From assembly GCA_965202585.1 (NCBI GenBank), contig OZ241833.1:36084001-36148000 (forward strand): DNA of 64,000 nt, written 5' to 3'. Every line of letters starts with the position of its first letter. Positions within the stretch are counted from its first letter, which is position 1. Both the position numbers and the translations under genes were made by a program. Shown piece by piece: positions 10,465 to 48,535 of the stretch. The notes beneath the pieces are model-generated. The model searched no databases and was not told the origin of the DNA. It worked only from the letters and a program-made list of their open reading frames with translations. The DNA comes from Thalia democratica. Lineage: Eukaryota.

Positions 10465-10563
10465 ATCTTCTGTTTTATGTGCATTTGTTAAAAAATCAAT
10501 ATAAATATTTTTTCAACTAAAAAAGATTGCTCAATTTACAGAGATGTAAAGAGTTTACTTAAA

Positions 10564-10739
10564 CAGGGATGTGCCAGTGTTAAGTATTTTATTTACAACC
10601 AGGTTTCAATGACAAAAAATTGCGACCTCTTCAAGTGAATTAAAATAGTAAGCAATGTTGCTAGCCTGTAATGTTGTGTGCAGTTTACTAGTTGCAATAA
10701 ACCTGGTTGCAAATAAAACAACTAATTTGCATATCTCTA
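10564..10739. mobile_element. Small MITE-like element upstream of kelch K1
   Basis: Imperfect TIR cagggatgtgc / gcatatctcta and internal inverted repeat ttttatttacaaccaggttt / aaacctggttgcaaataaaa. It lies in a ~250-bp segment bounded by a duplicated ttaaaaaatcaatataaa that is absent upstream of the G-type kelch copies. Confidence 0.5.
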
Positions 10740-10795
10740 TTTAAAAAATCAATATAAAGTAATGGATTTAGTTATTTAATATAATTAAAGTAGAA

Positions 10796-12107
10796 TAGGG
10801 GTAGGCAACTTTTTAATCGGCTGGCTGGGTCCGAAAAAAAATATTTTTTGGCGAGCCGAGCATTTTGAGTTATTAATCTACTGGATCCAGTATACGGATC
10901 CAACAGAATAATAAATTTTTAAAACCGGGTCTTAATTAGAAACTACTATTATTCGGCCAGATACTAATTTTATGCGTCTAATAGATTATTATTGCAAAAT
11001 CATTTCTTTCACAAAAATTTCACAAGTATGACATTTTAAGTGTTTATTAAGTACTCAGATTATTATATTTATTATAACCCTGAAAAGCACTAATACTAAT
11101 TATATAAATACAAAACTATGATTACTAAAAATTACTTGAGACAAACTTTGACTTGCTAAGTTTAGCATTAAGTTTTTAAATTCTTTAAATTTTGAATTTC
11201 TAAATGTAATGTCAAACTAAAGTTCATCGTCATATCAAACTTAATGAAAAATAAAATTATGATATAAATGTACTTCTCCGCTTATAACACTGACTGTTCT
11301 ATATTTGCAACTGTTGGTAAATACGTCAAGTTGTTCTTACTGAGACTGAAAAACACAGTATAAGTTTTAACTTTAATACCTTTTCTACAGAGTAATGTTT
11401 ATTAGCGAAAGTAACCTTTCTATTAAGTTGGTATTCAATTCGTTCACATGCCTAAACAAATGTAGCATGAATCTGAGAGACCATTCATATTTGAAAAATG
11501 ATTTGAATTATTTTAATTTCATTTCACTCAAAAATAACTAATTAGCGGTTTTCGGTCCCAAACGTGTCTTATGAATTTTTTAAACAATATAAAAATTTAA
11601 AGTTGAGTAGTTGACTGAAAACAGATGTGAACTGCTGTTTGGAAAATGATAAAAACTACTTTTTTTGATATCAATTTAAACAACTCTCTGTTTTTTTAGG
11701 AAGACTTTGACTTTTGACTCGTCAATATTTTATTAGTGTTATTAAAATGATAGACTGCCAAAGGTAGCTAAGTAAAATATCAGATTTAAATAAAAGTTTT
11801 GCTTTGGGTAATTTGAAAAAAGAATATTCCAACTGAGTTTGAACAAAACAAAAACATTAGGACAAAACGGTGTTTTTATAACTATACACAAATATAAAAT
11901 AAAAACATTTTCAAACATGCAACGAAGTCTAATTATTACAATTTGTGTAGTAAAAGTATGGTACAAAGTTTGTAACATTAAACTTTGCAGGCCAGTCATT
12001 TTCATCGGCGGGCCAAATTCCATTTAAAGTTTAAAAAAGTTAGCGGACCGGGCTTTTCAACTCTGCGGGCTTGATCCGGCCCGCGGTCAGTACATTGCCT
12101 ACCGCTA
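10796..12107. mobile_element. Non-autonomous hAT-superfamily DNA transposon
   Basis: 14-bp TIR taggggtaggcaac / attgcctaccgcta (perfect gttgcctaccccta in the paralog) and 8-bp TSD aagtagaa / aaatagaa. A decayed minus-strand frame (WSLRFMLHLFRHVNELNTNLIER, ~11400-11490) weakly resembles hAT transposase. Confidence 0.8.
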
Positions 12108-19999: not shown

Positions 20000-20381
20000 A
20001 AAAAAACACACAAAACTGTCTAGAGTTGCTTGAAAATACCAAGTTTATAAAATCGTGTTTTTAACTATTTTTTAGTCTTGCCTATTTAACCGTTTCCTAA
20101 CTTTTCTAAAATTCTGGCAAATGAAAAAAAAAACCAGTAAGAAAATTAATTAAAACTTTGTGTGTTTAAATAATCAAGTGGTTAAAATTTTCTTCTTATA
20201 AATTTAACTACTTAACAAATGTTTTATTTATAAATAACAACATTTTATTGTCCGTTACAACATGAAACACAACAAAAAGTTTAACAAATACTTTTTCAGT
20301 GAATATTTCGAAAGCAGAAAGTAATAAAACTAAATTTTATCCTTTTAAATTTTGAAAGATAATTTGACTATAGCCCAAAAA
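19978..20381. repeat. Direct copy of the kelch-downstream block (matches ~55055-55459)
   Basis: aaataataacatatattt...aaaactgtctagagttgcttgaaaatacc...gactatagcccaaaaag matches the 55-kb variant. Confidence 0.85.
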
Positions 20382-20516
20382 GCATTCAAAATCGCAACTG
20401 TTACTGTTGGTCTCAGTAAATTAATAATGTTGAACGGCAGCAAGCTCAAAAATCAATTACAACCCAGACATGAGCTTGCCTGAACTGCGCAATGCTTGAA
20501 GGAGTCATAATTACTC
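20382..20516 (-). repeat. 135-bp inverted copy of 42084-42218
   Basis: Reverse complement of gagtaattatgactcc...cagttgcgattttgaatgc with one mismatch seen. Confidence 0.85.
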
Positions 20517-20891
20517 TTTCTACTACTTTCTACTATTTTCAAATACTCTTAAAAAATACTTCAAGTTTTTAATAACTGCCGTTTAAACTAAGTATTAAAA
20601 CAAAATTACTCCACTAATTTTAACTTTAAACAAATCTAAATTTGTTAACCTAAATTCTGCTTAAAAACTAAAATAAAACTACCGTTTTAACTAAGCATTA
20701 AGGATAATTGCTCTACTTAAAAGAAAAAATAATATTTTAACTTTAAACAAATCTGAATTCGTTAAGCTAAATTCCTGGCTCAGAAAGCTCGCTTTCTTAT
20801 GATTTTGCTTCGCAAAAAAGGCCCGCTTCGCGCTCGATCTTGCTTTAACTTCCAGACCTCGAAAGCTTCGCTTTCTTTTTACGTCCCAACC

Positions 20892-21617
20892 TCAGAAAGC
20901 TCCGCTTACTTTCGGTTTTGCTTTGCAAAAATAAGCACAACAGCGCGCTTCGCGCGCGATTGTGCGATCTTGCTTTGACTTCCATGCCTCCAAAGATTCT
21001 CTTTCATTGTACGTCCCAACCTCAGAAAGCTCCGCTTTCTTTCGGTTTTGCTTCGCAAAATAAGCACAACAGCGCGCTTTGCGCGCGATTGTGCGATCTT
21101 GCTTTCGGCCTCTCTTCGAACAGCGGTTTTCGACTTTTTTGCTGTCAACAACGTTTTGTAAAATTGCAGCACGCTCGTCGTTTCCCGCAAAAGCCGAGCT
21201 TTCGCGCAGCAAACGCTCCAAGCTGCCGCTCGACAACAAACTGAGACGCACTTTTGCGAAGAGATCGCTCGCGAAAGCTCTTCTGCCTTCAAAGTCGCGG
21301 CTCAGCCAACCGTTGGCTGCGTTGACGACCTCAAGCTCGGAAGTGACATGCAGTGAAGAGCTTGAAAGTACTTTTGCAACCAGAGCAGAGCTCAGCTGCT
21401 GAAAGTTTTCAGTTTCAGCGACCACCGTGAAAAATCGTTCTATGTAGCGCAGCAAAGCCTTAGAAATGTTTTTTAAACTGAAGGTGGCAGTTATCTCATA
21501 AAAGGCCGCCACATTCTTGAAACTTGTTTTCTCCTTGAAAACTTCGCAAATCTGGTTGCTTACTTCAACTTCACTCAGCAAAATCTTGCTTATCTTCAAA
21601 GTTGAAACAGTTTTCAT
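20892..21617 (-). pseudogene. Truncated kelch-like copy: first ~163 aa (BACK) fused in frame to 78 aa of repeat-derived tail
   Basis: The ORF matches K2 nearly exactly up to DSKKVE, then continues NRCSKRGRKQDR... from the F block. Junction at 21133/21134. Confidence 0.85.
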
Positions 21618-21640
21618 ATCTTCTGTTTTGAATGCATTTG

Positions 21641-23141
21641 TTAAAAAATCAATAAAAAAATAAGGGATTTAATTTTTAAAAATAATTAAAGTAGAAGAGA
21701 GGCGGGTATAAATAAAAGCTTTTCCTAAAAATGTCCAAAAGAACCAAACTTCGAAAAACTTACAGTTTACCGCTGCTGGGGATCGATCTACCGTGCCTGT
21801 ACGCGGCCCCCAACTCCACACGCTGTGCTACCAGTCCACTTTATTGTGCCGATGTAATATTATAAACTTAATATTAAACATATAAGTTCATTTTAAAATT
21901 TAATCCACTTTATCATTAAGAAAACTTAAAGTAAACGCTGAAGAAATAATAGAAGAATAATTAACACATTACTTTATAGTATTTACATAATTAAATAATT
22001 TTTAAAATGCGCTGTTTGAATTTAATCAAAATTTTGTCTATCAAAAAGTTATCTTAAAATATTAAAAAGTCTTTATTTCATCTTTTTAAATTAAGGAACT
22101 ACTGAGAAGGAAAATACGGAGTTTAAACGTATATTTGTACAATAAAGCCAGACTGTTGACCAACTCTTTCTTGTGACTTTGTATATAAGAAAACATTATC
22201 AAGAGATTTTAAATCTTAAAATGTTTCTTTTTTTTTTAATTTGAAATATAAACTTTATTTAAAATCGAAACTTAATCTGTTATTAAATTGTGATTTATTA
22301 CTGAGTTTAACACATTTGTTCAAATTTTTAATTTATAAGCTAAGTAAAGTTACATACCTTTTGTAAATAAATAAAAATGCAATTCGTTTTTTAACTTTAA
22401 AACCACCATTTCTCACTTCAAAAAAAACTATGTAATGGAAAGCGACACTTCTTTTTTTAAATATTTTTGTTTAGTAGTACAAGCTATTAAATTTAAAAGT
22501 TCGTAACCTTTAGTTTTTAACATGGCTTATAACTTTTATTTATGCTAAAACTATCATAGATCATCTACTTAACGATTAGATTTGTACTTAAAGATAGTTT
22601 TAAGTGAAGAAAAAGTTAATTATAACACTTAAAGTAAACGTTCTTATTAGTAGTTATAATAATTGTATATTAACACTTAGTATGCAGTTGTAAAAACTTA
22701 AGAACTTGTGTTGAAGTAAAAAAACATTACTGTACTTACAATATTTATATAGTAAAACTAGTTTTGTTACCTCATCAAACCAACCTATTTAAAAAACAAA
22801 CGCTTCTAATCCAACAAAGCTTTTACTGATAGTTTGAAAAACTGTTTGAAATTTAAAACAGTAATTCGTTTAATTATAAACATTTATACATTTCAAGTAA
22901 CTGTGCTGATGTCTGTAATCTTAGAAACAAATAATTTATTGTTAATGAATGTTAATAAGAACACAACAGCGTCGTTTAACATAAACAATAACAAAATAAG
23001 TTTTATAATTAATATGGATTACTGTAAATTACTTTCTTAGAGTGGTTTTCAGGTTAAATATATCTATGAAGTAAACAATAAAACAATTAAGAGGTACTTT
23101 AAATTGAAAACAGATTTTAATAAATGGCCAAGAGCATCGCA
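21641..23141. repeat. Block G (1.5 kb, kelch-upstream type 2), copy 1; other copies ~24845-26340, ~32655-34125, ~44220-45715
   Basis: Near-identical text in four places (gtagaagagaggcgggtataaataaaagc ... aatggccaagagcatcgcac). Confidence 0.9.
21770..21837 (-). other. tRNA-like / possible tRNA-derived SINE head inside block G (also 24974-25041, 32760-32827, 44350-44417)
   Basis: Minus strand GGACTGGTAGCACAGCGTGTGGAGTTGGGGGCCGCGTACAGGCACGGTAGATCGATCCCCAGCAGCGG has an A-box-like TAGCACAGCG and a B-box-like GATCGATCCC about 30 nt apart. I could not fold a clean cloverleaf. Confidence 0.3.
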
Positions 23142-23200
23142 CGTTGCCAACGGTTGCCAACGGTTGGCAACGGTTGCCAACGGTTGGCCAACGGTTGGCT
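23142..23200. repeat. ~5.5 tandem copies of a 10-mer (cggttgccaa / cggttggcaa) at an inversion junction
   Basis: cgttgccaa cggttgccaa cggttggcaa cggttgccaa cggttggcca acggttggct. Derived from the kelch palindrome agccaac-c-gttggct. Confidence 0.9.
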
Positions 23201-23370
23201 GAGCCGCGACTTTGAAGGCAGAAGAGCTTTCGCGAGCGATCTCTTCGCAAAAGTGCGTCTCAGTTTGTTGTCGAGCGGCAGCTTGGAGCGTTTGCTGCGC
23301 GAAAGCTCGGCTTTTGCGGGAAACGACGAGCGCGCTGCAATTTTACAAAACGTTGTTGACAGCAAAAAAG
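23187..23370 (+). pseudogene. Inverted internal fragment of the kelch-like gene (ANGWLS...DSKK)
   Basis: Part of ORF 23124-23612; matches kelch residues ~101-161 on the opposite strand. Confidence 0.85.
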
Positions 23371-24638
23371 TCGAAAACCGCTGTTCGAAGAGAGGCCGAA
23401 AGCAAGATCGCACAATCGCGCGCAAAGCGCGCTGTTGTGCTTATTTTGCGAAGCAAAACCGAAAGAAAGCGGAGCTTTCTGAGGTTGGGACGTACAATGA
23501 AAGAGAAGCTTTGGAGGCATGGAAGTCAAAGCAAGATCGCACAATCGCGCGCGAAGCGAGCTGTTGTGCTTATTTTTGCAAAGCAAAACCGAAAGTAAGC
23601 GGAGCTTTCTGAGGTTGGGACGTAAAAAGAAAGCGAAGCTTTCGAGGTCTGGAAGTTAAAGCAAGATCGAGCGCGAAGCGGGCCTTTTTTGCGAAGCAAA
23701 ATCATAAGAAAGCGAGCTTTCTGAGCCAGGAATTTAGCTTAACGAATTCAGATTTGTTTAAAGTTAAAATATTATTTTTTCTTTTAAGTAGAGCAATTAT
23801 CCTTAATGCTTAGTTAAAACGGTAGTTTTATTTTAGTTTTTAAGCAGAATTTAGGTTAACAAATTTAGATTTGTTTAAAGTTAAAATTAGTGGAGTAATT
23901 TTGTTTTAATACTTAGTTTAAACGGCAGTTATTAAAAACTTGAAGTATTTTTTAAGAGTATTTGAAAATAGTAGAAAATATTAAAAATTTTTTATATTTG
24001 TAATATTTTAATTATAATTTTATTTACTTTATTATAAATTATTATTAATTAGTATTTGCTTTATTTGGCTAGCACAAAAGCGCGCTCTGCGCGCGGTGTG
24101 CGATACTTTTAGCTACTTATTACAAACTATTTTCTTACTTATGTAGTTCTTTTTGTTTTATAGTTAAGTGAATAGATATATATATTTTTCCTTTTTACAT
24201 TATCTGTTTCAAACTAACTTGTTCTAACCCATAGTTTAAACATAAGTTTTCTAAAATTTTAAGAGTTTTTGATAGTATTTCAAAATTTTAAAAATTTCTA
24301 ACTAATAATTTTAATTTACTTATTTTATTATTTATCTGCCTTATTCGGCTAGCACAAAAGCGCGCTTTGCGCGCGGTGTGCGATACTTTTAGCTACTTAT
24401 TACAAACTATTTTCTTACTTATGTAGTTCTTTTTGTTTTATAGTTAAGTGAATAGATATATATATTTTTCCTTTTTACATTATCTGTTTCAAACTAACTT
24501 GTTCTAACCCATAGTTTAAACATAAGTTTTCTAAAATTTTAAGAGTTTTTGATAGTATTTCAAAATTTTAAAAATTTCTAACTAATAATTTTAATTTACT
24601 TATTTTATTATTTATCTGCCTTATTCGGCTAGCACAAA
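23371..24638 (-). mobile_element. Inverted copy of the H-F hairpin element with an extra 280-bp unit
   Basis: Reverse complement of 26330-27353. The motif agcacaaa recurs at 24071, 24351 and 24631 (280-bp period). Confidence 0.7.
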
Positions 24639-24821
24639 TCGTTCTATGTAGCGCAGCAAAGCCTTAGAAATGTTTTTTAAACTGAAGGTGGCAGTTATCT
24701 CATAAAAGGCCGCCACATTCTTGAAACTTGTTTTCTCCTTGAAAACTTCGCAAATCTGGTTGCTTACTTCAACTTCACTCAGCAAAATCTTGCTTATCTT
24801 CAAAGTTGAAACAGTTTTCAT
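24639..24821 (-). pseudogene. 5' fragment of the kelch-like gene (first ~62 codons)
   Basis: MKTVSTLKISK...RYIERF, then joined to inverted H at agcacaaa|tcgttc (aaa microhomology). Confidence 0.85.
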
Positions 24822-26329
24822 ATCTTCTGTTTTGAATGCATTTGTTAAAAAATTAATAAAAAAATAAGGGATTTAATTTTTAAAAATAATTAAAGTAGAA
24901 GAGAGGCGGGTATAAATAAAAGCTTTTCCTAAAAATGTCCAAAAGAACCAAACTTCGAAAAACTTACAGTTTACCGCTGCTGGGGATCGATCTACCGTGC
25001 CTGTACGCGGCCCCCAACTCCACACGCTGTGCTACCAGTCCACTTTATTGTGCCGATGTAATATTATAAACTTAATATTAAACATATAAGTTCATTTTAA
25101 AATTTAATCCACTTTATCATTAAGAAAACTTAAAGTAAACGCTGAAGAAATAATAGAAGAATAATTAACACATTACTTTATAGTATTTACATAATTAAAT
25201 AATTTTTAAAATGCGCTGTTTGAATTTAATCAAAATTTTGTCTATCAAAAAGTTATCTTAAAACATTAAAAAGTCTTTATTTCATCTTTTTAAAATAAAG
25301 AACTACTGAGAAGGAAAATACGGAGTTTAAACGTATATTTGTACAATAAAGCCAGACTGTTGACCAACTCTTTCTTGTGACTTAGTATATAAGAAAACAT
25401 TATCAAGAGATTTTAAATCTTAAAATGTTTCTTTTTTTTTTAATTTGAAATATAAACTTTATTCAAAATCGAAACTTAATCTGTTATTAAATTGTGATTT
25501 ATTACTGAGTTTAACACATTTGTTCAAATTTTTAATTTATAAGCTAAGTAAAGTTACATACCTTTTGTAAATAAATAAAAATGCAATTCGTTTTTTAACT
25601 TTAAAACCACCATTTCTCACTTCAAAAAAAACTATGTAATGGAAAGCGACACTTCTTTTTTTAAATATTTTTGTTTAGTAGTACAAGCTATTAAATTTAA
25701 AAGTTCGTAACCTTCAGTTTTTAACATGGCTTATAACTTTTATTTATGCTAAAACTATCTTAGATCATCTACTTAACGATTAGATTTGTACTTAAAGATA
25801 GTTTTAAGTGAAGAAAAAGTTAATTATAACACTTAAAGTAAACGTTCTTATTAGTAGTTATAATAATTGTATATTAACACTTAGTATGCAGTTGTAAAAA
25901 CTTAAGAACTTGTGTTGAAGTAAAAAAACATTACTGTACTTACAATATTTATATAGTAAAACTAGTTTTGTTACCTCATCAAACCAACCTATTTAAAAAA
26001 CAAACGCTTCTAATCCAACAAAGCTTTTACTGATAGTTTGAAAAACTGTTTGAAATTTAAAACAGTAATTCGTTTAATTATAAACATTTATACATTTCAA
26101 GTAACTGTGCTGATGTCTGTAATCTTAGAAACAAATAATTTATTGTTAATGAATGTTAATAAGAACACAACAGCGTCGTTTAACATAAACAATAACAAAA
26201 TAAGTTTTATAATTAATATGGATTACTGTAAATTACTTTCTTAGAGTGGTTTTCAGGTTAAATATATCTATGAAGTAAACAATAAAACAATTAAGAGGTA
26301 CTTTAAATTGAAAACAGATTTTAATAAAT

Positions 26330-27353
26330 GGCCAAGAGCATCGCACACCGCGCGCAAAGCGCGCTTTTGTGCTAGCCGAATAAGGCAGATAAATAATAAA
26401 ATAAGTAAATTAAAATTATTAGTTAGAAATTTTTAAAATTTTGAAATACTATCAAAAACTCTTAAAATTTTAGAAAACTTATGTTTAAACTATGGGTTAG
26501 AACAAGTTAGTTTGAAGCAGATAATGTAAAAAGGAAAAATATATATATCTATTCACTTAACTATAAAACAAAAAGAACTACATAGGTAAGAAAATAGTTT
26601 GTAATAAGTAGCTAAAAGTATCGCACACCGCGCGCAGAGCGCGCTTTTGTGCTAGCCAAATAAAGCAAATACTAATTAATAATAATTTATAATAAAGTAA
26701 ATAAAATTATAACTAAAATATTACAAATATAAAAAATTTTTAATATTTTCTACTATTTTCAAATACTCTTAAAAAATACTTCAAGTTTTTAATAACTGCC
26801 GTTTAAACTAAGTATTAAAACAAAATTACTCCACTAATTTTAACTTTAAACAAATCTAAATTTGTTAACCTAAATTCTGCTTAAAAACTAAAATAAAACT
26901 ACCGTTTTAACTAAGCATTAAGGATAATTGCTCTACTTAAAAGAAAAAATAATATTTTAACTTTAAACAAATCTGAATTCGTTAAGCTAAATTCCTGGCT
27001 CAGAAAGCTCGCTTTCTTATGATTTTGCTTCGCAAAAAAGGCCCGCTTCGCGCTCGATCTTGCTTTAACTTCCAGACCTCGAAAGCTTCGCTTTCTTTTT
27101 ACGTCCCAACCTCAGAAAGCTCCGCTTACTTTCGGTTTTGCTTTGCAAAAATAAGCACAACAGCGCGCTTCGCGCGCGATTGTGCGATCTTGCTTTGACT
27201 TCCATGCCTCCAAAGCTTCTCTTTCATTGTGCGTCCCAACCTCAGAAAGCTCCGCTTTCTTTCGGTTTTGCTTCGCAAAATAAGCACAACAGCGCGCTTT
27301 GCGCGCGATTGTGCGATCTTGCTTTCGGCCTCTTTTCGAACAGCGGTTTTCGA
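26330..27353 (+). mobile_element. H-F element: ~1-kb repeat with imperfect terminal inverted motifs and arrays of triloop hairpins (unclassified, non-coding)
   Basis: The left motif atcgcacaccgcgcgcaaagcgcgcttttgtgctag occurs twice (280-bp period). It is the inverse of the right motif aagcacaacagcgcgcttcgcgcgcgattgtgcgat, which also occurs twice within ~130-bp units. No TSD identified. Confidence 0.6.
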
Positions 27354-27424
27354 TTTAATTATCCATCCCACCCGCCCCAAAAATTATATCCAATATATAT
27401 TCTAAACTATTTTTTTAATTTCAG

Positions 27425-27700
27425 AAATTTCATGTTACGTCACTAACTCTTTCAGATGTTCATTTTAGTCGACATAAAATCGTTTAAAAATATGTATGAA
27501 AAATTTGCATAAAATTAGCATAACTTTTTTTTTTATTTCATGTTACGTCACTAACTCTTCCAGATGTTCGTTTTAGTCGACATAAAATCGTTTAAAAATA
27601 TGTATGAAAAATTTGCATAAAATTAGCATAACTTTTTTTTTTATTTCATGTTACGTCACTAACTCTTCCAGATGTTCGTTTTAGTCGACATAAAATCTTT
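27425..27700. repeat. 108-bp tandem repeat, 3 units (also 35210-35480 with 3 units, 46800-46965 with 2 units)
   Basis: catgttacgtcactaactc starts at 27431/27539/27647, 35214/35322/35430 and 46805/46913. Confidence 0.9.
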
Positions 27701-29016
27701 TGTTAACCTAAATTCCTGCGCTAAAAACTACCGTTTTAACTATGCATTAAGGATAATTGCTCTACTTGAAAGAAAAAATAATATTTTAACTTTAAAAACA
27801 TGTATAAAAAATTTGCATAAAATGATCTTAACTTTTTTTTTGAGTTGATTATCAAATTTAATATCTTTGGAACGTAACTTTAAATTACTGTAATGATGTT
27901 AATTCTTGATAAATAAAAGTGTTATACGTTTAAGAAATAAATAAAGTATTACACAACTGTAATAACTGATAAATATAACAAAGAAAGTCAATGTGCTATA
28001 ATGAAACATCACTTTTGTTTTTTTGAAGTTTGATAAATCATTGCAATCTAGTATTGGTTTGAGAAAAAATAAATTTTATTTTTAGCTTACGTTAGCAGCT
28101 TACTTAAAAATCTTAAAGTAAACATTAACGATTTTGTACAATAAACTAAAAAACGATAACGCTTTTAAATCAACTTTGGTTGAATTAAATTTCAAGTTAA
28201 ACTTTAAAAGCACTAATTGCTTTAAGTTAGTTCAGAAGCTTTTTAATGTGTTGAATAGATAAATTGATAGTTTTTAATGTTTCGGAATAAAACAATCGTA
28301 TGGTCCTGGACAAGACGTTAAAAGGTATCCATGATGTGCGACTCGATAACCGAAAGGTTTTTGTGGACCAGGTCCTAGAGCCAAATATTTTGAACGTCTT
28401 TTTTTTGTCTTTCAATAAACTATAAAGGTGTATAAATAAGTTGATTGTCTAATTAACATACTATCTTATGAGAATATTTTATAAATTGTTTTAACTTCTC
28501 AAATTTAACAAATCGTTTTTAATTTTTACTTCTCAAATTTATTTATAACTTAACGAATGACTATTTAAAACTGACATGGCAAGCTACTTTGCTAATAAAG
28601 TCAATCAGCGTTTAGACGTGTAAGCGGGTTGACGCCGTGAAGGTAACTGTTAGTTGCAGGCATATAGCTTATAGCTCAAGTCGACTCGAGGTGGCTGTTA
28701 AAGGTTGTATAGCAGACCTGATTGAATAAGTAGCGAGGGAAGGTAAAGCGAAAGCTTGTTATCATTCTCAATTAAAATAACTGATTAGTGTACTCCTTAG
28801 TAAAAGTATTAAATTTATTGGTATGTTTTAAATGTTTATTACTAACAAAAAAAAAAGATTTTTAATCTGTTCTTTACAATTTTGATGGTCAAGTTGTTCA
28901 GTACTTAAGTGAATTTATTAACAAATTTAGAGCTTAAGAACTACATAAGTTTTAAATAATACCTTTTGATAAGTTTCATTAACAACACTTTGATATTGTA
29001 TGTTTTGATTTTTAGG

Positions 29017-29087
29017 AAAGAAATAAAGAGATCACAACTACTAGAGGAGATTTATTCTTTCAATACATTTTTATGCAAACTAAGTTT
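29017..29087 (-). mobile_element. Older relic of the same Penelope-like pLTR family, truncated within the ribozyme (also 36802-36872, 48285-48355)
   Basis: aaagagatcacaactactagaggagatttattctttcaatac...caaactaagttt aligns with agagagatctcaactgctgggagagaag...atttattctttcaaaa...caaactaagtttcgg at 13707-13780. Confidence 0.55.
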
Positions 29088-29265
29088 AACATTTATAAAG
29101 GGTTTTATTTTGAAGACCATGAAAATGTTTTCAGCTTAACACATCAAAGTTGTTGATAAAGTCTTAAGAACAATCCGTATACTTTACTTAGCAGCTATCA
29201 AAGTTTCACTTTTAAGACATTGAGTTTTTTTTTCAGCATTAAAACATCATAATTGTTTTTAACAG

Positions 29266-29377
29266 ATTCGACAAGTTCAACTCAAAATATAATCCGATCG
29301 GGCAGAGCATTCTGAGGGAAGTTTACATAAAAACCGATAACCAGATTGGAGGAAAATATTTTGCACATGTTTGCAGG
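29266..29377 (+). pseudogene. AMPD: Isolated AMP deaminase exon, copy 1
   Basis: Acceptor ttttaacag|, donor agg|gttagt. Translation (R)[37 protein letters not shown] closely matches the conserved AMPD2 segment recalled as [37 protein letters not shown]. No other AMPD exon was found in the window. Confidence 0.85.
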
Positions 29378-29442
29378 GTTAGTATGAATTTCTATTTGTT
29401 TTGTTAATTAACAATAAAAAACATAACAATCATTAATTTTAG

Positions 29443-32400
29443 TTTCAGTCGCTGAATTATTGAATTTTTCTGCATTTATTTCACTTGAAGGTAAAGTTTG
29501 TTAGAATATTTTACAGTTTTAACATGTTTTAAAATGAACAAAACTAAAGACTATTTTAAAATTATTTTAATTAAAAAAAAAAACTGAAAACTAAATACGT
29601 TGTTAAGCTGTATCTACAATGCTTTTATTTTATTTTTAATGTTTATAGTTATTATTTGGTATGTTTTTTACTTGAATTTTTAACCGAGCAATTTGTTTTC
29701 GTTTTGTGTAACATAGCACTTTAACTAATGTATTCGCAAAAGTAAAAAAAAAAATATAAGTTTTCTTTTACTACTTTTGTTTTGAAATATCCTTTATGAA
29801 GATTTTTTGAATATTTATTATAAAACTAACAAAGCAATATCTACAGAGTATGTAATATAGTATAATAAATTGGTTTAAAACAAAAAATTTAAAACATTAT
29901 CAGCATTTCATTCTTTCAGTGGCAAAAAAAAAAGAAAGTTTGTTTTTTAATAAAATTTTGTAAACTAAATATAGCATTTGCAAATTAAGTAACAATATAC
30001 ATTTTTGAAAATATTTTGGTTTTATTTTTAAAAACTAGGAAAACAATTTTAATATTGTACAACGTTTAAAAGTTATAAATGCCGGTCAATTACAAAAAAC
30101 ACTACTGTTTGCGTTTATTATTATTTCAAAGCAGTTCAAAAATTTTAAGTTTTATATATTCTCTTTTAAAAAAGTTGTGAACTAATCAATAACTAATTTA
30201 ATTTCGTTAACTCTAACTTTATGTTTTTCATGATTGTCTCTATTTAAATAAAGTAATATTCTACAAGTAAGGTCTTACTTGTTAATTAGCTTGCTATTAG
30301 TGCTTAAAGTTTTAGTTAAAACTCTTTGTTTATTAAACAGAACACTTTTTAACCCTTTTACTTTACTAACCTTTTTAAGTTTAGAAGGCTACAAATAAAT
30401 TATGTTTTTATATCAGAACAATACAACTTAAACAAACAAAAAATTTATAAAATCACTATAGAAATATATTCTAACAACTCCAAATCGTAAATAACTTATC
30501 ACCAATGGGTTTTGCAAGTATTTCGTTGTTATTTAAACTCAATAATTTTAAAAATTAATAAACTACCTTGTTTCAGGTTTGCAAAGCAATTTGAACAAGG
30601 AAGTCGGGATGGTCGCTCTGGGTCTCTTGTACCTGACGTTTCTCACAACTTCCATGTTCTTGCCCCCCCTAGTGATGAACATGCTCGATTGCAGGAAAAT
30701 TCTCTGCATTTCAACTCTCGCGTATGCAACCTACACTGCCGGTTTGTTGGCGTTGTTGTCTATGAAATGTTTTTATTGACTACGAACTTTACTGTTTTTT
30801 AATACGAAACCTGCTTACAGTCGTTTAATGAAAAACTACTAAACATTCGTTTTGAATTCTTATATATTTCTTTATCTTAATTCACTTTTATAAAAAGTCT
30901 AATTAGCTTATGAAATGTAAGCCGTTATAAAATAATGCTTCTCAAAATCTATAAATTTAAAGTTCATACACTTAAACTTAATTTCTTAAAATTAGACGGT
31001 TAATAGTCTAAGGCTAATAAACCATTGTATTTACAACCGCTATATTTAAAAACTCAATTTGTAGGAACCACGCTTATATAACTACTGAGTATTAAATGCA
31101 TAAAATATGTTTGAAAAACAAAAAATATTTTTATTAGCATATTTTTAGACGGTTTTAAGCATCAATACTTTGTCAAAAACTTAACAAAATTTTGTCGTTT
31201 AAAATAAAATGTTGTTAATGCTTTATTATTATTCTTTATTTATTTATTAATACTTGTTTTATTTATATAAATCAGTGATTAATCTACAGTACAAATTACT
31301 ATTCTTATATAACTTTTTTTCATTCAAAGCTATTATAACGACTCAATTGTGTTTAGAAATATTACTTTTCAAATATTAAGAAAGATATCTTCAAGATATT
31401 TATAAACTAATAAGACCAAACACCATAAATAAACAAACTTCGCTTCAGTTTATAATTTTTTCGCAGCAAATTTCTACCCTGTCGCTCACACCATCGTTCC
31501 CGCCGCCGTGTTGCTGGGGACGGGCGCCTCGTTGTTATGGAGCGGCGTGCGGGTCTACGTGGCCAAGATTGCGGTGTGGCACGCCACCGCGCGGCAGAAA
31601 AGCGCGGAAAAAACCACCTACTTGTTCTTCGGCGTCTTCTTCGCCGTTTTCTCGTTCGCCGTCATCGTCGGCAACCTCGTCATCTCCTTCCTCGCTTCCG
31701 TGACGAGTGACGTCACGACGAGCAACATGACGTCATACAATTCCACCGACTGCGGGCTGTTTTACACAATGGATGAAGCTCCCCAGAATTCCTCGTCGGA
31801 GGTGAACTCCCTTCCAAGGGAGAAAGTAAAGTTGGGTTTGGGCGTCTTCCTGGCCATGCAGCTGGTCGGCGCCCTCTTGTGCCTGTTCCTCTACGAAACC
31901 GAACCCAGTTTCCGTAGCAACGACATAGAAGTAACAGAAGGGGAATCCCCCGAAGTTATAGAGGAGAAGAGCACGTTGAGGCTGCTGAAGCTGATCTTCA
32001 AGGTTTTGAGGAGGGACAAGCCCGCATTGCTGCTCATGCCCATCACCATGAGGGGGGGTTTTTTGTGGGCGTTCGTCATGGGCCAGTTCACCAGCGCCTG
32101 GATCTCTTGCGCCATTGGTTAGTAAATATTTCATGATATATAGTTGATTTAATTGAAATAAGTTTCTTTGTACAGAAACAAAATTTTTAAATAATTTTAG
32201 GCGTTGTGGTAGTTTGAAATGTGAAAGCATAACTACTGTAAGTTTTTTTTTTTCTTGATCTTCAAACTTTATAAGAATTAGAGAGAATTGTGTATTAAAA
32301 AAAATTCAGTCATACGGACAGGTATTTAAAACTTAAACTGTTGTTTATACCTAGAATAAGTTATTAAACTTTATAAATTTTCAGTTAAATTTTTTGTCTA

Positions 32401-32648: not shown

Positions 32649-34112
32649 AATTTGAGATTTAATTTTTAAAAATAATTAAAGTAGAAGAGAGGCGGGTATA
32701 AATAAAAGCTTTTCCTAAAAATGTCCAAAAGAACCAAACTTCGAAAAACTTACAGTTTACCGCTGCTGGGGATCGATCTACCGTGCCTGTACGCGGCCCC
32801 CAACTCCACACGCTGTGCTACCAGTCCACTTTATTGTGCCGATGTAATATTATAAACTTAATATTAAACATATAAGTTCATTTTAAAATTTAATCCACTT
32901 TATCATTAAGAAAACTTAAAGTAAACGCTGAAGAAATAATAGAAGAATAATTAACACATTACTTTATAGTATTTACATAATTAAATAATTTTTAAAATGC
33001 GCTGTTTGAATTTAATCAAAATTTTGTCTATCAAAAAGTTATCTTAAAATATTAAAAAGTCTTTATTTCATCTTTTTAAAATAAAGAACTACTGAGAAGG
33101 AAAATACGGAGTTTAAACGTATATTTGTACAATAAAGCCAGACTGTTGACCAACTCTTTCTTGTGACTTAGTATATAAGAAAACATTATCAAGAGATTTT
33201 AAATCTTAAAATTTTTCTTTTTTTTTTAATTTGAAATATAAACTTTATTCAAAATCGAAACTTAATCTGTTATTAAATTGTGATTTATTACTGAGTTTAA
33301 CACATTTGTTCAAATTTTTAATTTATAAGCTAAGTAAAGTTACATACCTTTTGTAAATAAATAAAAATGCAATTCGTTTTTTAACTTTAAAACCACCATT
33401 TCTCACTTCAAAAAAAACTATGTAATGGAAAGCGACACTTCTTTTAAATATTTTTGTTTAGTAGTACAAGCTATTAAATTTAAAAGTTCGTAACCTTTAG
33501 TTTTTAACATGGCTTATAACTTTTATTTATGCTAAAACTATCTTAGATCATCTACTTAACGATTAGATTTGTACTTAAAGATAGTTTTAAGTGAAGAAAA
33601 AGTTAATTATAACACTTAAAGTAAACGTTCTTATTAGTAGTTATAATAATTGTATATTAACACTTAGTATGCAGTTGTAAAAACTTAAGAACTTGTGTTG
33701 AAGTAAAAAAACATTACTGTACTTACAATATTTATATAGTAAAACTAGTTTTGTTACCTCATCAAACCAACCTATTTAAAAAACAAACGCTTCTAATCCA
33801 ACAAAGCTTTTACTGATAGTTTGAAAAACTGTTTGAAATTTAAAACAGTAATTCGTTTAATTATAAACATTTATACATTTCAAGTAACTGTGCTGATGTC
33901 TGTAATCTTAGAAACAAATAATTTATTGTTAATGAATGTTAATAAGAACACAACAGCGTCGTTTAACATAAACAATAACAAAATAAGTTTTATAATTAAT
34001 ATGGATTACTGTAAATTACTTTCTTAGAGTGGTTTTCAGGTTAAATATATCTATGAAGTAAACAATAAAACAATTAAGAGGTACTTTAAATTGAAAACAG
34101 ATTTTAATAAAT

Positions 34113-35136
34113 GGCCAAGAGCATCGCACACCGCGCGCAAAGCGCGCTTTTGTGCTAGCCGAATAAGGCAGATAAATAATAAAATAAGTAAATTAAAATT
34201 ATTAGTTAGAAATTTTTAAAATTTTGAAATACTATCAAAAACTCTTAAAATTTTAGAAAACTTATGTTTAAACTATGGGTTAGAACAAGTTAGTTTGAAA
34301 CAGATAATGTAAAAAGGAAAAATATATATATCTATTCACTTAACTATAAAACAAAAAGAACTACATAAGTAAGAAAATAGTTTGTAATAAGTAGCTAAAA
34401 GTATCGCACACCGCGCGCAGAGCGCGCTTTTGTACTAGCCAAATAAAGCAAATACTAATTAATAATAATTTATAATAAAGTAAATAAAATTATAACTAAA
34501 ATATTACAAATATAAAAAATTTTTAATATTTTCTACTATTTTCAAATACTCTTAAAAAATACTTCAAGTTTTTAATAACTGCCGTTTAAACTAAGTATTA
34601 AAACAAAATTACTCCACTAATTTTAACTTTAAACAAATCTAAATTTGTTAACCTAAATTCTGCTTAAAAACTAAAATAAAACTACCGTTTTAACTAAGCA
34701 TTAAGGATAATTGCTCTACTTGAAAGAAAAAATAATATTTTAACTTTAAACAAATCTGAATTCGTTAAGCTAAATTCCTGGCTCAGAAAGCTCGCTTTCT
34801 TATGATTTTGCTTCGCAAAAAAGGCCCGCTTCGCGCTCGATCTTGCTTAAGCTTCCAGACCTCGAAAGCTTCGCTTTCTTTTTACGTCCCAACCTCAGAA
34901 AGCTCCGCTTACTTTCGGTTTTGCTTTGCAAAAATAAGCACAGCAGCGCGCTTCGCGCGCGATTGTGCAATCTTGCTTTGACTTCCATGCCTCCAAGGCT
35001 TCTCTTTCATTGTACGTCCCAACCTCAGAAAGCTCCGCTTTCTTTCGGTTTTGCTTCGCAAAATAGGCACAACAGCGCGCTTTGCGCGCGATTGTGCGAT
35101 CTTGCTTTCGGCCTCTCTTCGAACAGCGGTTTTCGA
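34113..35136 (+). mobile_element. H-F hairpin element copy
   Basis: Near-identical to 26330-27353. Confidence 0.6.
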
Positions 35137-37051
35137 TTTAATTATCCATCCCACCCACCCCAAAAATTATATCCAATATATATTCTAAACTGTTTTTTTA
35201 ATTTCAGAAATTTCATGTTACGTCACTAACTCTTTCAGATGTTCATTTTAGTCGACATAAAATCGTTTAAAAATATGTATGAAAAATTTGCATAAAATTA
35301 GCATAACTTTTTTTTTTATTTCATGTTACGTCACTAACTCTTCCAGATGTTCGTTTTAGTCGACATAAAATCGTTTAAAAATATGTATGAAAAATTTGCA
35401 TAAAATTAGCATAACTTTTTTTTTTATTTCATGTTACGTCACTAACTCTTACAGATGTTCGTTTTAGTCGACATAAAATCTTTTGTTAACCTAAATTCCT
35501 GCTCTAAAAACTACCGTTTTAACTATGCATTAAGGATAATTGCTCTACTTGAAAGAAAAAAATAATATTTTAACTTTAAAAACATGTATAAAAAATTTGC
35601 ATAAAATGATCTTAACTTTTTTTTTGAGTTGATTATCAAATTTAATATCTTTGGAACGTAACTTTAAATTACTGTAATGATGTTAATTCTTGATAAATAA
35701 AAGTGTTATACGTTTAAGAAATAAATAAAGTATTACATAACTGTAATAACTGATAAATATAACAAAGAAAGTCAATGTGCTATAATGAAACATCACTTTT
35801 GTTTTTTTGAAGTTTGATAAATCATTGCAATCTAGTATTGGTTTGAAAAAAAATAAATTTTATTTTTAGCTTACGTTAGCAGCTTACTTAAAAATCTTAA
35901 AGTAAACATTAACGATTTTGTACAATAAACTAAAAAACGATAACGCTTTTAAATCAACTTTGGTTGAATTAAATTTCAAGTTAAACTTTAAAAGCACTAA
36001 TTGCTTTAAGTTAGTTCAGAAGCTTTTTAATGTGTTGAATAGATAAATTGATAGTTTTTAATGTTTCGGAATAAAACAATCGTATGGTCCTGGACAAGAC
36101 GTTAAAAGGTATCCATGATGTGCGACTCGATAACCGAAAGGTTTTTGTGGACCAGGTCCTAGAGCCAAATATTTTGAACGTCTTTTTTTTGTCTTTCAAT
36201 AAACTATAAAGGTGTATAAATAAGTTGATTGTCTAATTAACATACTATCTTATGAGAATATTTTATAAATTGTTTTAACTTCTCAAATTTAACAAATCGT
36301 TTTTAATTTTTACTTCTCAAATTTATTTATAACTTAACGAATGACTATTTAAAACTGACATGGCAAGCTACTTTGCTAATAAAGTCAATCAGCGTTTAGA
36401 CGTGTAAGCGGGTTGACGCCGTGAAGGTAACTGTTAGTTGCAGGCATATAGCTTATAGCTCAAGTCGACTCGAGGTGGCTGTTAAAGGTTGTATAGCAGA
36501 CCTGATTGAATAAGTAGCGAGGGAAGGTAAAGCGAAAGCTTGTTATCATTCTCAATTAAAATAACTGATTAGTGTACTCCTTAGTAAAAGTATTAAATTT
36601 ATTGGTATGTTTTAAATGTTTATTACTAACAAAAAAAAAAAGATTTTTAATCTGTTCTTTACAATTTTGATGGTCAAGTTGTTCAGTACTTAAGTGAATT
36701 TATTAACAAATTTAGAGCTTAAGAACTACATAAGTTTTAAATAATACCTTTTGATAAGTTTCATTAACAACACTTTGATATTGTATGTTTTGATTTTTAG
36801 GAAAGAAATAAAGAGATCACAACTACTAGAGGAGATTTATTCTTTCAATACATTTTTATGCAAACTAAGTTTAACATTTATAAAGGGTTTTATTTTGAAG
36901 ACCATGAAAATGTTTTCAGCTTAACACATCAAAGTTGTTGATAAAGTCTTAAGAACAATCCGTATACTTTACTTAGCAGCTATCAAAGTTTCACTTTTAA
37001 GACATTGAGTTTTTTTTTTCAGCATTAAAACATCATAATTGTTTTTAACAG

Positions 37052-44220: not shown

Positions 44221-45703
44221 TTAAAAAATCAATAAAAAAATAAGGGATTTAATTTTTAAAAATAATTAAAGTAGAAGAGAGGCGGGCATAAATAAAAGCT
44301 TTTCCTAAAAATGTCCAAAAGAACCAAACTTCGAAAAACTTACAGTTTACCGCTGCTGTGGATCGATCTACCGTGCCTGTACGCGGCCCCCAACTCCACA
44401 CGCTGTGCTACCAGTCCACTTTATTGTGCCGATGTAATATTATAAACTTAATATTAAACATATAAGTTCATTTTAAAATTTAATCCACTTTATCATTAAG
44501 AAAACTTAAAGTAAACGCTGAAGAAATAATAGAAGAATAATTAACACATTACTTTATAGTATTTACATAATTAAATAATTTTTAAAATGCGCTGTTTGAA
44601 TTTAATCAAAATTTTGTCTATCAAAAAGTTATCTTAAAATATTAAAAAGTCTTTATTTCATCTTTTTAAAATAAAGAACTACTGAGAAGGAAAATACGGA
44701 GTTTAAACGTATATTTGTACAATAAAGCCAGACTGTTGACCAACTCTTTCTTGTGACTTAGTATATAAGAAAACATTATCAAGAGATTTTAAATCTTAAA
44801 ATGTTTCTTTTTTTTAATTTGAAATATAAACTTTATTCAAAATCGAAACTTAATCTGTTATTAAATTGTGATTTATTACTGAGTTTAACACATATGTTCA
44901 AATTTTTAATTTATAAGCTAAGTAAAGTTACATACCTTTTGTAAATAAATAAAAATGCAATTCGTTTTTTAACTTTAAAACCACCATTTCTCACTTCAAA
45001 AAAAACTATGTAATGGAAAGCGACACTTCTTTTTTTAAATATTTTTGTTTAGTAGTACAAGCTATTAAATTTAAAAGTTCGTAACCTTTAGTTTTTAACA
45101 TGGCTTATAACTTTTATTTATGCTAAAACTATCTTAGATCATCTACTTAACGATTAGATTTGTACTTAAAGATAGTTTTAAGTGAAGAAAAAGTTAATTA
45201 TAACACTTAAAGTAAACGTTCTTATTAGTAGTTATAATAATTGTATATTAACACTTAGTATGCAGTTGTAAAAACTTAAGAACTTGTGTTGAAGTAAAAA
45301 AACATTACTGTACTTACAATATTTATATAGTAAAACTAGTTTTGTTACCTCATCAAACCAACCTATTTAAAAAACAAACGCTTCTAATCCAACAAAGCTT
45401 TTACTGATAGTTTGAAAAACTGTTTGAAATTTAAAACAGTAATTCGTTTAATTATAAACATTTATACATTTCAAGTAACTGTGCTGATGTCTGTAATCTT
45501 AGAAACAAATAATTTATTGTTAATGAATGTTAATAAGAACACAACAGCGTCGTTTAACATAAACAATAACAAAATAAGTTTTATAATTAATATGGATTAC
45601 TGTAAATTACTTTCTTAGAGTGGTTTTCAGGTTAAATATATCTATGAAGTAAACAATAAAACAATTAAGAGGTACTTTAAATTGAAAACAGATTTTAATA
45701 AAT

Positions 45704-46727
45704 GGCCAAGAGCATCGCACACCGCGCGCAAAGCGCGCTTTTGTGCTAGCCGAATAAGGCAGATAAATAATAAAATAAGTAAATTAAAATTATTAGTTAG
45801 AAATTTTTAAAATTTTGAAATACTATCAAAAACTCTTAAAATTTTAGAAAACTTATGTTTAAACTATGGGTTAGAACAAGTTAGTTTGAAACAGATAATG
45901 TAGAAAGGAAAAATATATATATCTATTCACTTAACTATAAAACAAAAAGAACTACATAAGTAAGAAAATAGTTTGTAATAAGTAGCTAAAAGTATCGCAC
46001 ACCGCGCGCAGAGCGCGCTTTTGTGCTAGCCAAATAAAGCAAATACTAATTAATAATAATTTATAATAAAGTAAATAAAATTATAACTAAAATATTACAA
46101 ATATAAAAAATTTTTAATATTTTCTACTATTTTCAAATACTCTTAAAAAATACTTCAAGTTTTTAATAACTGCCGTTTAAACTAAGTATTAAAACAAAAT
46201 TACTCCACTAATTTTAACTTTAAACAAATCTAAATTTGTTAACCTAAATTCTGCTTAAAAACTAAAATAAAACTACCGTTTTAACTAAGCATTAAGGATA
46301 ATTGCTCTACTTGAAAGAAAAAATAATATTTTAACTTTAAACAAATCTGAATTCGTTAAGCTAAATTCCTGGCTCAGAAAGCTCGCTTTCTTATGATTTT
46401 GCTTCGCAAAAAAGGCCCGCTTCGCGCTCGATCTTGCTTTAACTTCCAGACCTCGAAAGCTTCGCTTTCTTTTTACGTCCCAACCTCAGAAAGCTCCGCT
46501 TACTTTCGGTTTTGCTTTGCAAAGATAAGCACAACAGCGCGCTTCGCGCGCGATTGTGCGATCTTGCTTTGACTTCCATGCCTCCAAGGCTTCTCTTTCA
46601 TTGTACGTCCCAACCTCAGAAAGCTCCGCTTTCTTTCGGTTTTGCTTCGCAAAATAAGCACAACAGCGCGCTTTGCGCGCGATTGTGCGATCTTGCTTTC
46701 GGCCTCTCTTCGAACAGCGGTTTTCGA
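45704..46727 (+). mobile_element. H-F hairpin element copy
   Basis: Near-identical to 26330-27353. Confidence 0.6.
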
Positions 46728-48535
46728 TTTAATTATCCATCCCACCCACCCCAAAAATTATATCCAATATATATTCTAAACTATTTTTTTAATTTCAGAA
46801 ATTTCATGTTACGTCACTAACTCTTTCAGATGTTCATTTTAGTCGACATAAAATCGTTTAAAAATATGTATGAAAAATTTGCATAAAATTAGCATAACTT
46901 TTTTTTTTATTTCATGTTACGTCACTAACTCTTCCAGATGTTCGTTTTAGTCGACATAAAATCTTTTGTTAACCTAAATTCCTGCTCTAAAAACTACCGT
47001 TTTAACTATGCATTAAGGATAATTGCTCTACTTGAAAGAAAAAATAATATTTTAACTTTAAAAACATGTATAAAAAATTTGCATAAAATGATCTTAACTT
47101 TTTTTTTGAGTTGATTATCAAATTTAATATCTTTGGAACGTAACTTTAAATTACTGTAATGATGTTAATTCTTGATAAATAAAAGTGTTATACGTTTAAG
47201 AAATAAATAAAGTATTACACAACTGTAATAACTGATAAATATAACAAAGAAAGTCAATGTGCTATAATGAAACATCACTTTTGTTTTTTTGAAGTTTGAT
47301 AAATCATTGCAATCTAGTATTGGTTTGAAAAAAAATAAATTTTATTTTTAGCTTACGTTAGCAGCTTACTTAAAAATCTTAAAGTAAACATTAACGATTT
47401 TGTACAATAAACTAAAAAACGATAACGCTTTTAAATCAACTTTGGTTGAATTAAATTTCAAATTAAACTTTAAAAGCACTAATTGCTTTAAGTTAGTTCA
47501 GAAGCTTTTTAATGTGTTGAATAGATAAATTGATAGTTTTTAATGTTTCGGAATAAAACAATCGTATGGTCCTGGACAAGACGTTAAAAGGTATCCATGA
47601 TGTGCGACTCGATAACCGAAAGGTTTTTGTGGACCAGGTCCTAGAGCCAAATATTTTGAACGTCTTTTTTTTGTCTTTCAATAAACTATAAAGGTGTATA
47701 AATAAGTTGATTGTCTAATTAACATACTATCTTATGAGAATATTTTATAAATTGTTTTAACTTCTCAAATTTAACAAATCGTTTTTAATTTTTACTTCTC
47801 AAATTTATTTATAACTTAACGAATGACTATTTAAAACTGACATGGCAAGCTACTTTGCTAATAAAGTCAATCAGCGTTTAGACGTGTAAGCGGGTTGACG
47901 CCGTGAAGGTAACTGTTAGTTGCAGGCATATAGCTTATAGCTCAAGTCGACTCGAGGTGGCTGTTAAAGGTTGTATAGCAGACCTGATTGAATAAGTAGC
48001 GAGGGAAGGTAAAGCGAAAGCTTGTTATCATTCTCAATTAAAATAACTGATTAGTGTACTCCTCAGTAAAAGTATTAAATCTGTTGGTATGTTTTAAATG
48101 TTTATTACTAACAAAATAAAAAAAGATTTTTAATCTGTTCTTTACAATTTTGATGGTCAAGTTGTTCAGTACTTAAGTGAATTTATTAACAAATTTAGAG
48201 CTTAAGAACTACATAAGTTTTAAATAATACCTTTTGATAAGTTTCATTAACAACACTTTGATATTGTATGTTTTGATTTTTAGGAAAGAAATAAAGAGAT
48301 CACAACTACTAGAGGAGATTTATTCTTTCAATACATTTTTATGCAAACTAAGTTTAACATTTATAAAGGGTTTTATTTTGAAGACCATGAAAATGTTTTC
48401 AGCTTAACACATCAAAGTTGTTGATAAAGTCTTAAGAACAATCCGTATACTTTACTTAGCAGCTATCAAAGTTTCACTTTTAAGACATTGAGTTTTTTTT
48501 TTTCAGCATTAAAACATCATAATTGTTTTTAACAG

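Follow-up and report, generated by a model that had tools for sequence, protein, structure and literature searches.

The 64-kb window analyzed here is AT-rich eukaryotic DNA (~28% GC) from contig C9 of the Thalia democratica assembly (801 Mb). An initial annotation had marked about 1 kb of it, positions 26330-27353, as an element of its own, built from GC-NNN-GC triloop hairpins and possibly a Helitron, Helentron, or foldback element. We find that these 1,024 bp are not a complete element: they are the hairpin-packed central third of a longer repeat, 3,545 bp at full length, of which the window holds an internal fragment (Table 1). The explanation that we favor, with moderate confidence, is an interspersed repeat of 3.5 kb, specific to the species and non-coding, whose ends are defined and whose fragments were placed and cut at microhomology-mediated junctions and then amplified with neighboring genes. 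Salp genomes are reported to contain >80% repeats, much of it unclassified (PMC10686999), and this family is one concrete, well-delimited example of such sequence.

About 320 kb of the genome was read as sequence, and the remaining copies were placed by probe coordinates alone. Family coordinates refer to a 20-kb stretch of C5:16.6 Mb (L031 and L038), hereafter the reference. The window contains five copies or pieces (Table 1), the piece at 22958-23142 being counted with the copy at 20517-21137. For the copy first marked, homology to copies at other loci begins at 26162 and stops at 28490; the longest stretch common to unrelated loci runs from reference position 9087 to about 12631. Full-length units lie at C5:16628086-16631630 and, twice, on C1156, and they run from ATATTTCAATATG... 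on the left to ...GCAACAATA on the right. Eight places, in 4 clusters, carry the left-terminal 28-mer, and a probe across the reference's own left flank matches its own cluster only; the right-terminal 28-mer has 9 matches, which belong to at least three clusters, and a probe moved 18 nt outward is unique to one locus. Both ends are also present in a 1.5-kb copy at C9:34661998-34663523 from which the middle is deleted. Because the same sharp ends recur in 3-4 clusters with unrelated flanks, and the internally deleted copy retains both, random breakage would not yield them; the full unit has moved as a unit at least three times. Genome probe matches revealed no longer element sharing the terminal 28-mers. 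The ORF (open reading frame) listing of the element holds only short, repeat-derived frames, none with a family match, and an Rfam search of 20000-29000 returned nothing relevant at E<=1.

In line with the initial annotation, the family is dispersed rather than confined to a single locus. A probe for the left inner end of the core (roughly the part first marked; Table 1) has 153 matches, on C5-C10, and probes for the left flank-core junction, the right inner end, and the core-right flank junction have 134, 123, and 114; reversed control patterns for the four gave zero matches. Logan contig depth is ~5,000 along 26215-27976 versus ~150 for a junction present in ~5 copies, a ratio that agrees with roughly 150 copies. 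(A reading of the same profile in which the core is more abundant than its flanks was dropped, since the depth is ~5,000 across 26215-27976 and the peaks are cross-mapping subrepeats.) Copies occur at >25 loci, on at least six chromosome-scale contigs (C5, C6, C7, C8, C9, and C10) and on small contigs, usually in local groups with periods of 2.1 to ~20 kb, and are 94-99% identical. A tree of 30 cores has a star-like backbone (~4-6% divergence) and places every genomic cluster in a separate clade, which suggests one seeding per cluster followed by local amplification. The clusters have nothing in common beyond the element, and their left ends (reference 9087, 9110, 9129, 9226, 9317, 9367, 9433, 9458, 9568 in the window, 9633, and 9687) and right ends (10778-10788, 11016, 11204-11216, 11521-11551, 11765-11801, 11932, 12366, 12431, and 12631) are private to each. 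The stretch first marked was matched in marine metagenome runs; pattern scans of metagenomes, in which records of the source genome are possibly absent, gave no independent copies, and a sensitive nhmmer search found no diverged copies within the loci read. Two classes were rejected: a long terminal repeat element, because the spacing of same-strand copies is variable and a coding interior is absent, and a 5'-truncated, LINE-like (long interspersed nuclear element) repeat, because copies differ at both ends and carry no A-rich or microsatellite tail.

At the loci read, the element lies mostly inside tandemly duplicated gene clusters (a RING-finger array and kelch, PARP-domain, and UNC-93 genes). 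In the RING array at C9:34.73 genes and element copies are equally diverged, at 94-96% alike, which indicates that they were duplicated together. In the window, the block 24863-31047 (old repeat, element, and mosaic) sits exactly at the joint between successive UNC-93/kelch units. Most copies are fragments with ends of their own; on the reading that we favor, they lodge between members of such clusters and would later have been multiplied along with the genes.

The same setting could suggest a functional intergenic module, either an enhancer/promoter or a structured RNA gene, maintained between tandem genes. In the RING array the element fills the entire intergenic spacer, from 79 bp past one ORF to 51 bp short of the next; each 108-bp unit in its right part (27427-27750) contains TTACGTCA, a word resembling a cAMP response element, and the octamer word ATTTGCAT; and a metatranscriptome run has contigs over the core, with none over 27365-28001. 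We nevertheless regard this explanation as very improbable. The module adjoins unrelated genes in either orientation, no relevant Rfam match was found, the stems show neither excess conservation nor covariation, and the RNA run consists of contigs only, at low depth, and may hold DNA. The two words may mark an enhancer-like module or have arisen by chance, given that the DNA is AT-rich.

Head-to-tail arrays exist at some loci, with periods of 2.1-2.2 kb (C9:28.78-28.88), 2.6 kb (C321), 2.7-2.8 kb (C8:50.84), and 4.4 kb (C9:27.2); their junctions vary between arrays, with no constant joint of 3' end to 5' end. Large homogeneous arrays (e.g., at C9:27.15-27.39 Mb), the modular build from subrepeats, the cluster-specific fragment ends, and the loci with left-part modules alone would all suit a sequence that never transposed, namely a complex satellite or duplicon that owes its spread solely to segmental duplication, unequal crossing-over, and extrachromosomal circles that re-inserted. 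This we consider unlikely: the constant head-to-tail monomer of a satellite is present at some loci only, the family is also dispersed with defined ends, and those ends are shared by clusters with unrelated flanks and by the internally deleted copy. The stretch C9:27150000-27392000 is itself a very homogeneous higher-order array of dozens of element copies, with recurring spacings of 4,412, 8,956, 16,897, and 19,916 bp.

The hairpins were described well from the start. Seven perfect stems (>=6 bp, GC-closed, 3-nt loop) lie in window 26990-27345, where 2000 shuffled sequences averaged 0.017 and never held more than 1, and a further 4-5 are imperfect, which agrees with the count of about 11 first given; element copies hold 44 of the 47 such stems in the whole window. 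The loops on the + strand are the pyrimidine triplets TTC, TCC, or TTT, and the reported ~130-bp arrangement is indeed one of tandem 130-bp units. On the minus strand the array presents seven GCGAAGC or GCGGAGC heptamers within 330 nt, all of them canonical GCGNAGC, the mini-hairpin consensus (PMC13037366), in which the stability of the d(GNA) loop depends on a C-G closing pair (PMC3201870). These exact heptamers sit at the tips of the minus-strand stems. The d(GCGNAGC) mini-hairpins are known from oligonucleotides and a few viral or bacterial sites (PMC13037366; PMC3201870), whereas the stability of the array here is predicted from its motifs; in the mini-hairpin literature we found no description of such an array in an animal repeat. 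Folding as single-stranded DNA, a check that the initial annotation had proposed, showed the array to be more stably folded than shuffled sequence, with z = -3.9 on the + strand and -2.4 on the minus strand.

The inverse motif noted in the left half occurs twice, as GCGCGC-aaa-GCGCGC at 26350-26364 and GCGCGC-aga-GCGCGC at 26630-26644, with CTAG 7 nt after each. Both are inverted copies of the right-half GCGCGC hairpin, so the strand that bears the purine loops changes from one half to the other. The element is further built of subrepeats with periods of 280, about 117, 130, and 108 bp, and the 280-bp array has grown to 2.1 units in an inverted copy in the window (24053-24638). Directly after the hairpin block comes a C-rich tract, 27363-27378, prone to form a G-quadruplex (G4). 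With a G4Hunter score of -1.85 it is the highest-scoring site in the element and within the top 0.03% of 20-nt windows of the 64 kb, and its G-rich strand is the one that carries the GCGNAGC motifs.

The core deserves consideration as a mobile element in its own right, that is, a 1.07-kb foldback or terminal-inverted-repeat transposon (26296-27362) anciently nested in another repeat, with the edge cuts as its true termini. The arms at its bounds, 26303-26373 and 27283-27358, form a 70-bp inverted repeat with 78% identity in reverse complement, and nhmmer detects a weak inverted likeness between the two halves (~20 bits over 570 nt). Copies in several clusters are cut within a few nt of both outer edges; left cuts lie at 26227, 26259, 26296, and 26298 and right cuts at 27356, 27362, 27363, and 27371. 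Three loci (C5:12.5, C6:76.96, and C7:51.0) match the left inner probe perfectly and are absent among the listed matches of both flank-junction probes. Against this, the edges scatter (26296/26298 on the left; 27353, 27362, 27363, and 27371 on the right) and no target-site duplication flanks the core in any copy read. In each case sister copies of the same cluster run on into the flank, so the cuts at the core edges are derived. The left flank junction is kept in 134 of 153 copies and the right in 114 of 123, so that both are present in ~90% of copies. A variant subfamily with TTCGTAC as its right inner end keeps the flank junctions too, in those of its copies that are listed (C8:35.39-35.42). 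A genome probe for an empty site, left flank joined to right flank without the core, had 0 matches. The C6, C7, and C10 loci also lack the right inner probe and are thus left-part fragments, not solo cores. We judge a nested core transposon improbable. The initial foldback label fares no better: inverted repeats with tandem subrepeats in their arms are shared with FB-like elements, but the only inverted repeat here is short, internal to the family unit, and far from its ends, and none was found at the ends of the mobile unit, as a terminal-inverted-repeat, miniature inverted-repeat transposable element (MITE), or foldback element would have.

The proposed Helitron or Helentron identity was weighed with criteria taken from PMC4067079. 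In a non-autonomous rolling-circle element (Helitron, Helentron, or HINE-like), Rep/Hel would recognize the hairpins and bypass of termination would yield variable right ends and arrays. Several traits agree. The central tandem repeats, palindromes, and lack of an obvious target-site duplication recall HINE/DINE-1 elements (PMC4067079); head-to-tail arrays of 2.1-2.8 kb occur; and, as in a canonical Helitron, a GC hairpin is followed by CTAG a few nt on, with gene-fragment mosaics nearby. HINE/DINE-1-like Helentrons and mollusc pearl/CvA-type elements are likewise non-coding and interspersed, have arms around variable internal tandem repeats, and share the palindromes, the seeding of tandem arrays, and the lack of a clear target-site duplication (PMC4067079, PMC7492417).

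The ends of the family, however, are not those of this class. Set by probes in 3-4 clusters, they carry neither 5' TC nor 3' CTRR. A canonical Helitron inserts between A and T without a target-site duplication; of the two left flanks read, one closes with ...AAAAC and the other with ...CTTTTT, so that C or T stands where A would be expected. The hairpin with its CTAG (26343-26375 and 26623-26655) is internal in every copy, and no copy terminates there. A canonical Helitron has a 16-20-nt palindrome ~11 bp from its 3' end, whereas the last 100 nt of the family unit contain no GC palindrome, and no palindrome lies within ~35 nt of the right end. In HINEs, subterminal inverted repeats of 12-15 bp lie 2-4 nt from the 5' end and a short palindrome lies 8-35 nt from the 3' end; these elements insert at TT, with T runs at the boundaries, and have Rep/Hel partners (PMC4067079, PMC7492417). 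Neither such repeats nor such a palindrome was found at the ends here, and the unit is 3.5 kb. When the first 340 nt of the unit were compared with its last 520 nt, blastn at word size 7 found no inverted repeat better than chance, and the joints, as said, vary from array to array. A search of the 801 Mb for PF14214 (Helitron_like_N) gave 0 matches, a weak test without working control genomes. Helitron or Helentron identity is not supported, and we consider a rolling-circle origin quite improbable. A CRESS (circular Rep-encoding single-stranded DNA virus) or geminivirus-like origin, suggested by the word AATATTAC at ~26718, was also rejected, because the word lies outside any stem-loop and the DNA there is AT-rich.

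What remains to be explained is how fragments of the repeat came to lie where they do, and here the junctions are informative. The initial annotation had placed four breakpoints, at 20527, 21133, 23142, and 24638, at the ends or internal motifs of the element. All four are real junctions involving it (J1-J4 in Table 1), but the first, at window 20517 and element 26737, is not at a hairpin. J3 and J4 bracket one GCGCGC hairpin from both sides; a third independent fragment (L027) stops in the loop of that hairpin, at 26356, and two other independent fragments stop at 27111 and 27114, at the foot of another. Exactly at two of the junctions stand new 10-mer tandem repeats, three of TACTACTTTC (20512-20540, element-templated) and 5.4 of GTTGCCAACG (23143-23197), which read as templated insertions, typical of slippage or polymerase-theta-type repair.

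Microhomology together with new 10-mer repeats is typical of replicative template switching, and the claim that local rearrangements arose in this way is supported by both and by a mosaic of short pieces copied from elsewhere beside the element. Fork stalling and template switching (FoSTeS) and microhomology-mediated break-induced replication (MMBIR) are forms of microhomology-mediated template switching at non-B DNA. The joints here resemble it in their microhomology of 3-7 nt, in short insertions that are templated, in segments that are inverted, in short copied pieces strung into chains, and in breakpoints that adjoin palindromes and a G4-prone tract; the difference is that the mechanism here is read from junction sequence alone. 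Template switching as the source of the local gene-fragment mosaic fits the junction anatomy, and Helitron capture does not; capture of gene fragments by the element itself, also proposed at first, was not shown.

Among the breakpoints of all copies read, the hairpins are not where junctions concentrate; the C-rich, G4-prone tract next to them is. Junctions at 27356, 27362, 27363, 27371, and 27378 put five within 23 nt (scan-statistic P=0.007). Four of these five are derived events in four different clusters, where sister copies continue normally, and several join tandem duplicates through microhomology, such as AGTT(T)AT in L027. Published Salpa genomes are reported to be rich in G4 motifs (PMC10686999). 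The module joins an unusual density of the most stable known DNA mini-hairpin motif to a G4-prone tract right after it, and independent duplication junctions recur there.

The anatomy, the copy number, the ends, the junction sequences, and the hot spot are read directly from the data. From the junctions we infer a mechanism in which one strand of the module, with its seven GCGNAGC mini-hairpins and the G4-prone tract directly after them, would act as an obstacle to replication. This would account for the pile-up of junctions at the right border of the module. Fragments would enter, and be cut at, junctions of replication-based, microhomology-mediated template switching, with the stalling and its direction likewise proposed from the arrangement of motifs and joints. 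A causal role of the non-B module in the C-tract hot spot and in J3 and J4 is plausible. Should the link be causal, this repeat would be a natural system in which to study the influence of non-B DNA on tandem gene duplication; should it not be, the analysis still removes a false Helitron call and shows repeat annotation how far the family truly extends and where it ends.

Several points weigh against this explanation. Hairpins as such are not enriched among the 33 distinct breakpoints in all copies read: 5 are near hairpins, which cover 13% of the sequence (P=0.44), contrary to the initial statement that most breakpoints fall there. Variable positions make up 26% of the stems versus 25% of other positions, and 15 stems compared in 30 copies showed no compensatory change, which leaves a function of the hairpins without support. 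The link of the hot spot to the G4-prone tract was drawn post hoc. Most of the ~150 copies were seen solely as probe matches, and flanks on both sides were read for one full-length copy only. Finally, the explanation names no mechanism by which the intact 3.5-kb unit moved.

In a bolder version, the mini-hairpin and G4-prone module might be a built-in replication barrier, the repeat spreading without a transposase by template switching of stalled forks at its right border and so copying fragments into new junctions. We regard this as a doubtful extension of the explanation above. If true, the repeat would be a self-propagating fragile site that drives repeated tandem amplification of adjacent genes (RING, kelch, PARP, and UNC-93) and hence gene-family expansion.

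Table 1. Features of the repeat, its copies, and its junctions. Positions are those of the window unless stated otherwise.
Feature	Position	Strand	Remarks
Window copy of repeat	26162..28490	+	Internal fragment, reference 9568-11801 of 3,545-bp unit; both family termini missing
Core, roughly the element first annotated	26296..27362	+	Imperfect inverted repeat at its bounds; several copies cut at its edges
280-bp subrepeat, 1.5 units	26259..26693	+	Inverse GCGCGC hairpin plus CTAG in each
Internal inverted repeat, left arm	26303..26373	+	Holds GCACA-cc-GCGCGC-aaa-GCGCGC-tt-TGTGC hairpin and CTAG
Hairpin array	26995..27325	+	2.6 tandem units of 130 bp, four hairpin types per unit
Internal inverted repeat, right arm	27283..27358	+	Holds last GCGCGC hairpin
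C-rich tract, G-rich on minus strand	27363..27378	-	Strongest G4-prone site of element; junction hot spot
108-bp subrepeat, 2.5-3 units	27427..27750	+	Right flank part
Nested abundant short repeat, ~120 bp	28303..28425		Separate repeat within right part; sharp start at 28303
Partial copy in rearranged block (= 26737-27356)	20517..21137	+	
Left 185 bp of a copy (= 26162-26346)	22958..23142	+	Cut at 5' side of GCGCGC hairpin, then new 10-mer repeats
Inverted copy (= 27356 back to 26366)	23367..24638	-	Extra 280-bp unit; cut at 3' side of same GCGCGC hairpin
Second full window-type copy	33945..36274	+	In next tandem unit
Third full window-type copy	45536..47756	+	One fewer 108-bp unit
Junction J1	21128-21137 (element 27353-27356)		Joins kelch exon region; imperfect 7-nt microhomology TTTC[G/A]A
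Junction J2	20517 (element 26737)		Away from hairpins; bears new copy of an element 10-mer
Junction J3	23142 (element 26346)		3 nt before inner GCGCGC stem; then 5.4 new 10-mer repeats
Junction J4	24638 (element 26366 in inverted copy)		1 nt after same GCGCGC stem; 3-4 nt microhomology
RING-finger genes, tandem array	L034:2576-4081, L041:403-1602, L041:4408-5856 (C9:34.72-34.74 Mb)		Interleaved with element copies; 20.58-kb period of whole array

Within the right part of the window copy, the nested short repeat at 28303-28425 stands out by a contig word depth of ~750,000-1,000,000 versus ~5,000 for the rest of the element. It contains the near-palindromic words GGTCCTGGAC and GGACCAGGTCC, has 83% copies at other loci read (C9:34.73 and C9:28.74), and is probably a MITE-like family or one resembling a short interspersed nuclear element.

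To the left of the window copy, 24863-26161 consists of two older dispersed repeat families, with 73-85% copies on C2, C4, C7, and at C9:27.7 Mb; many of these copies stop at the same point, ~7 nt ahead of the element. To the right, 28491-31047 is a mosaic of 90-350-bp pieces with best matches at C9:34.65, 27.70, 35.99, and 36.03 Mb. Counted within the mosaic, 30-122 matches C9:34650596 at 97% identity and 123-522 matches C9:27.698 Mb at 90-94%; 504-597 is a short repeat of a dispersed kind; 597-939 matches C9:35.993 Mb at 87%; and 940-2557 matches, at 91%, C9:36.027 Mb, which is a paralog of the region upstream of UNC-93.

Further along the window, a BACK-Kelch gene lies on the minus strand at 42776-44197. 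The middle-unit copies of this gene (42776-44238) are cut on their 5' side at 44238, which corresponds to 10505 in the outer units, and judging from that cut they should be without the BTB exon and promoter.

Elsewhere on C9, at 28.748 Mb (L040:836-1279), an ORF with a weak match to the GIY-YIG nuclease (E 9e-4, below the Pfam cut-off) lies ~500 bp past the point at which an element copy is truncated on the right; the ORF may belong to a Penelope-like element fragment that cut this copy.

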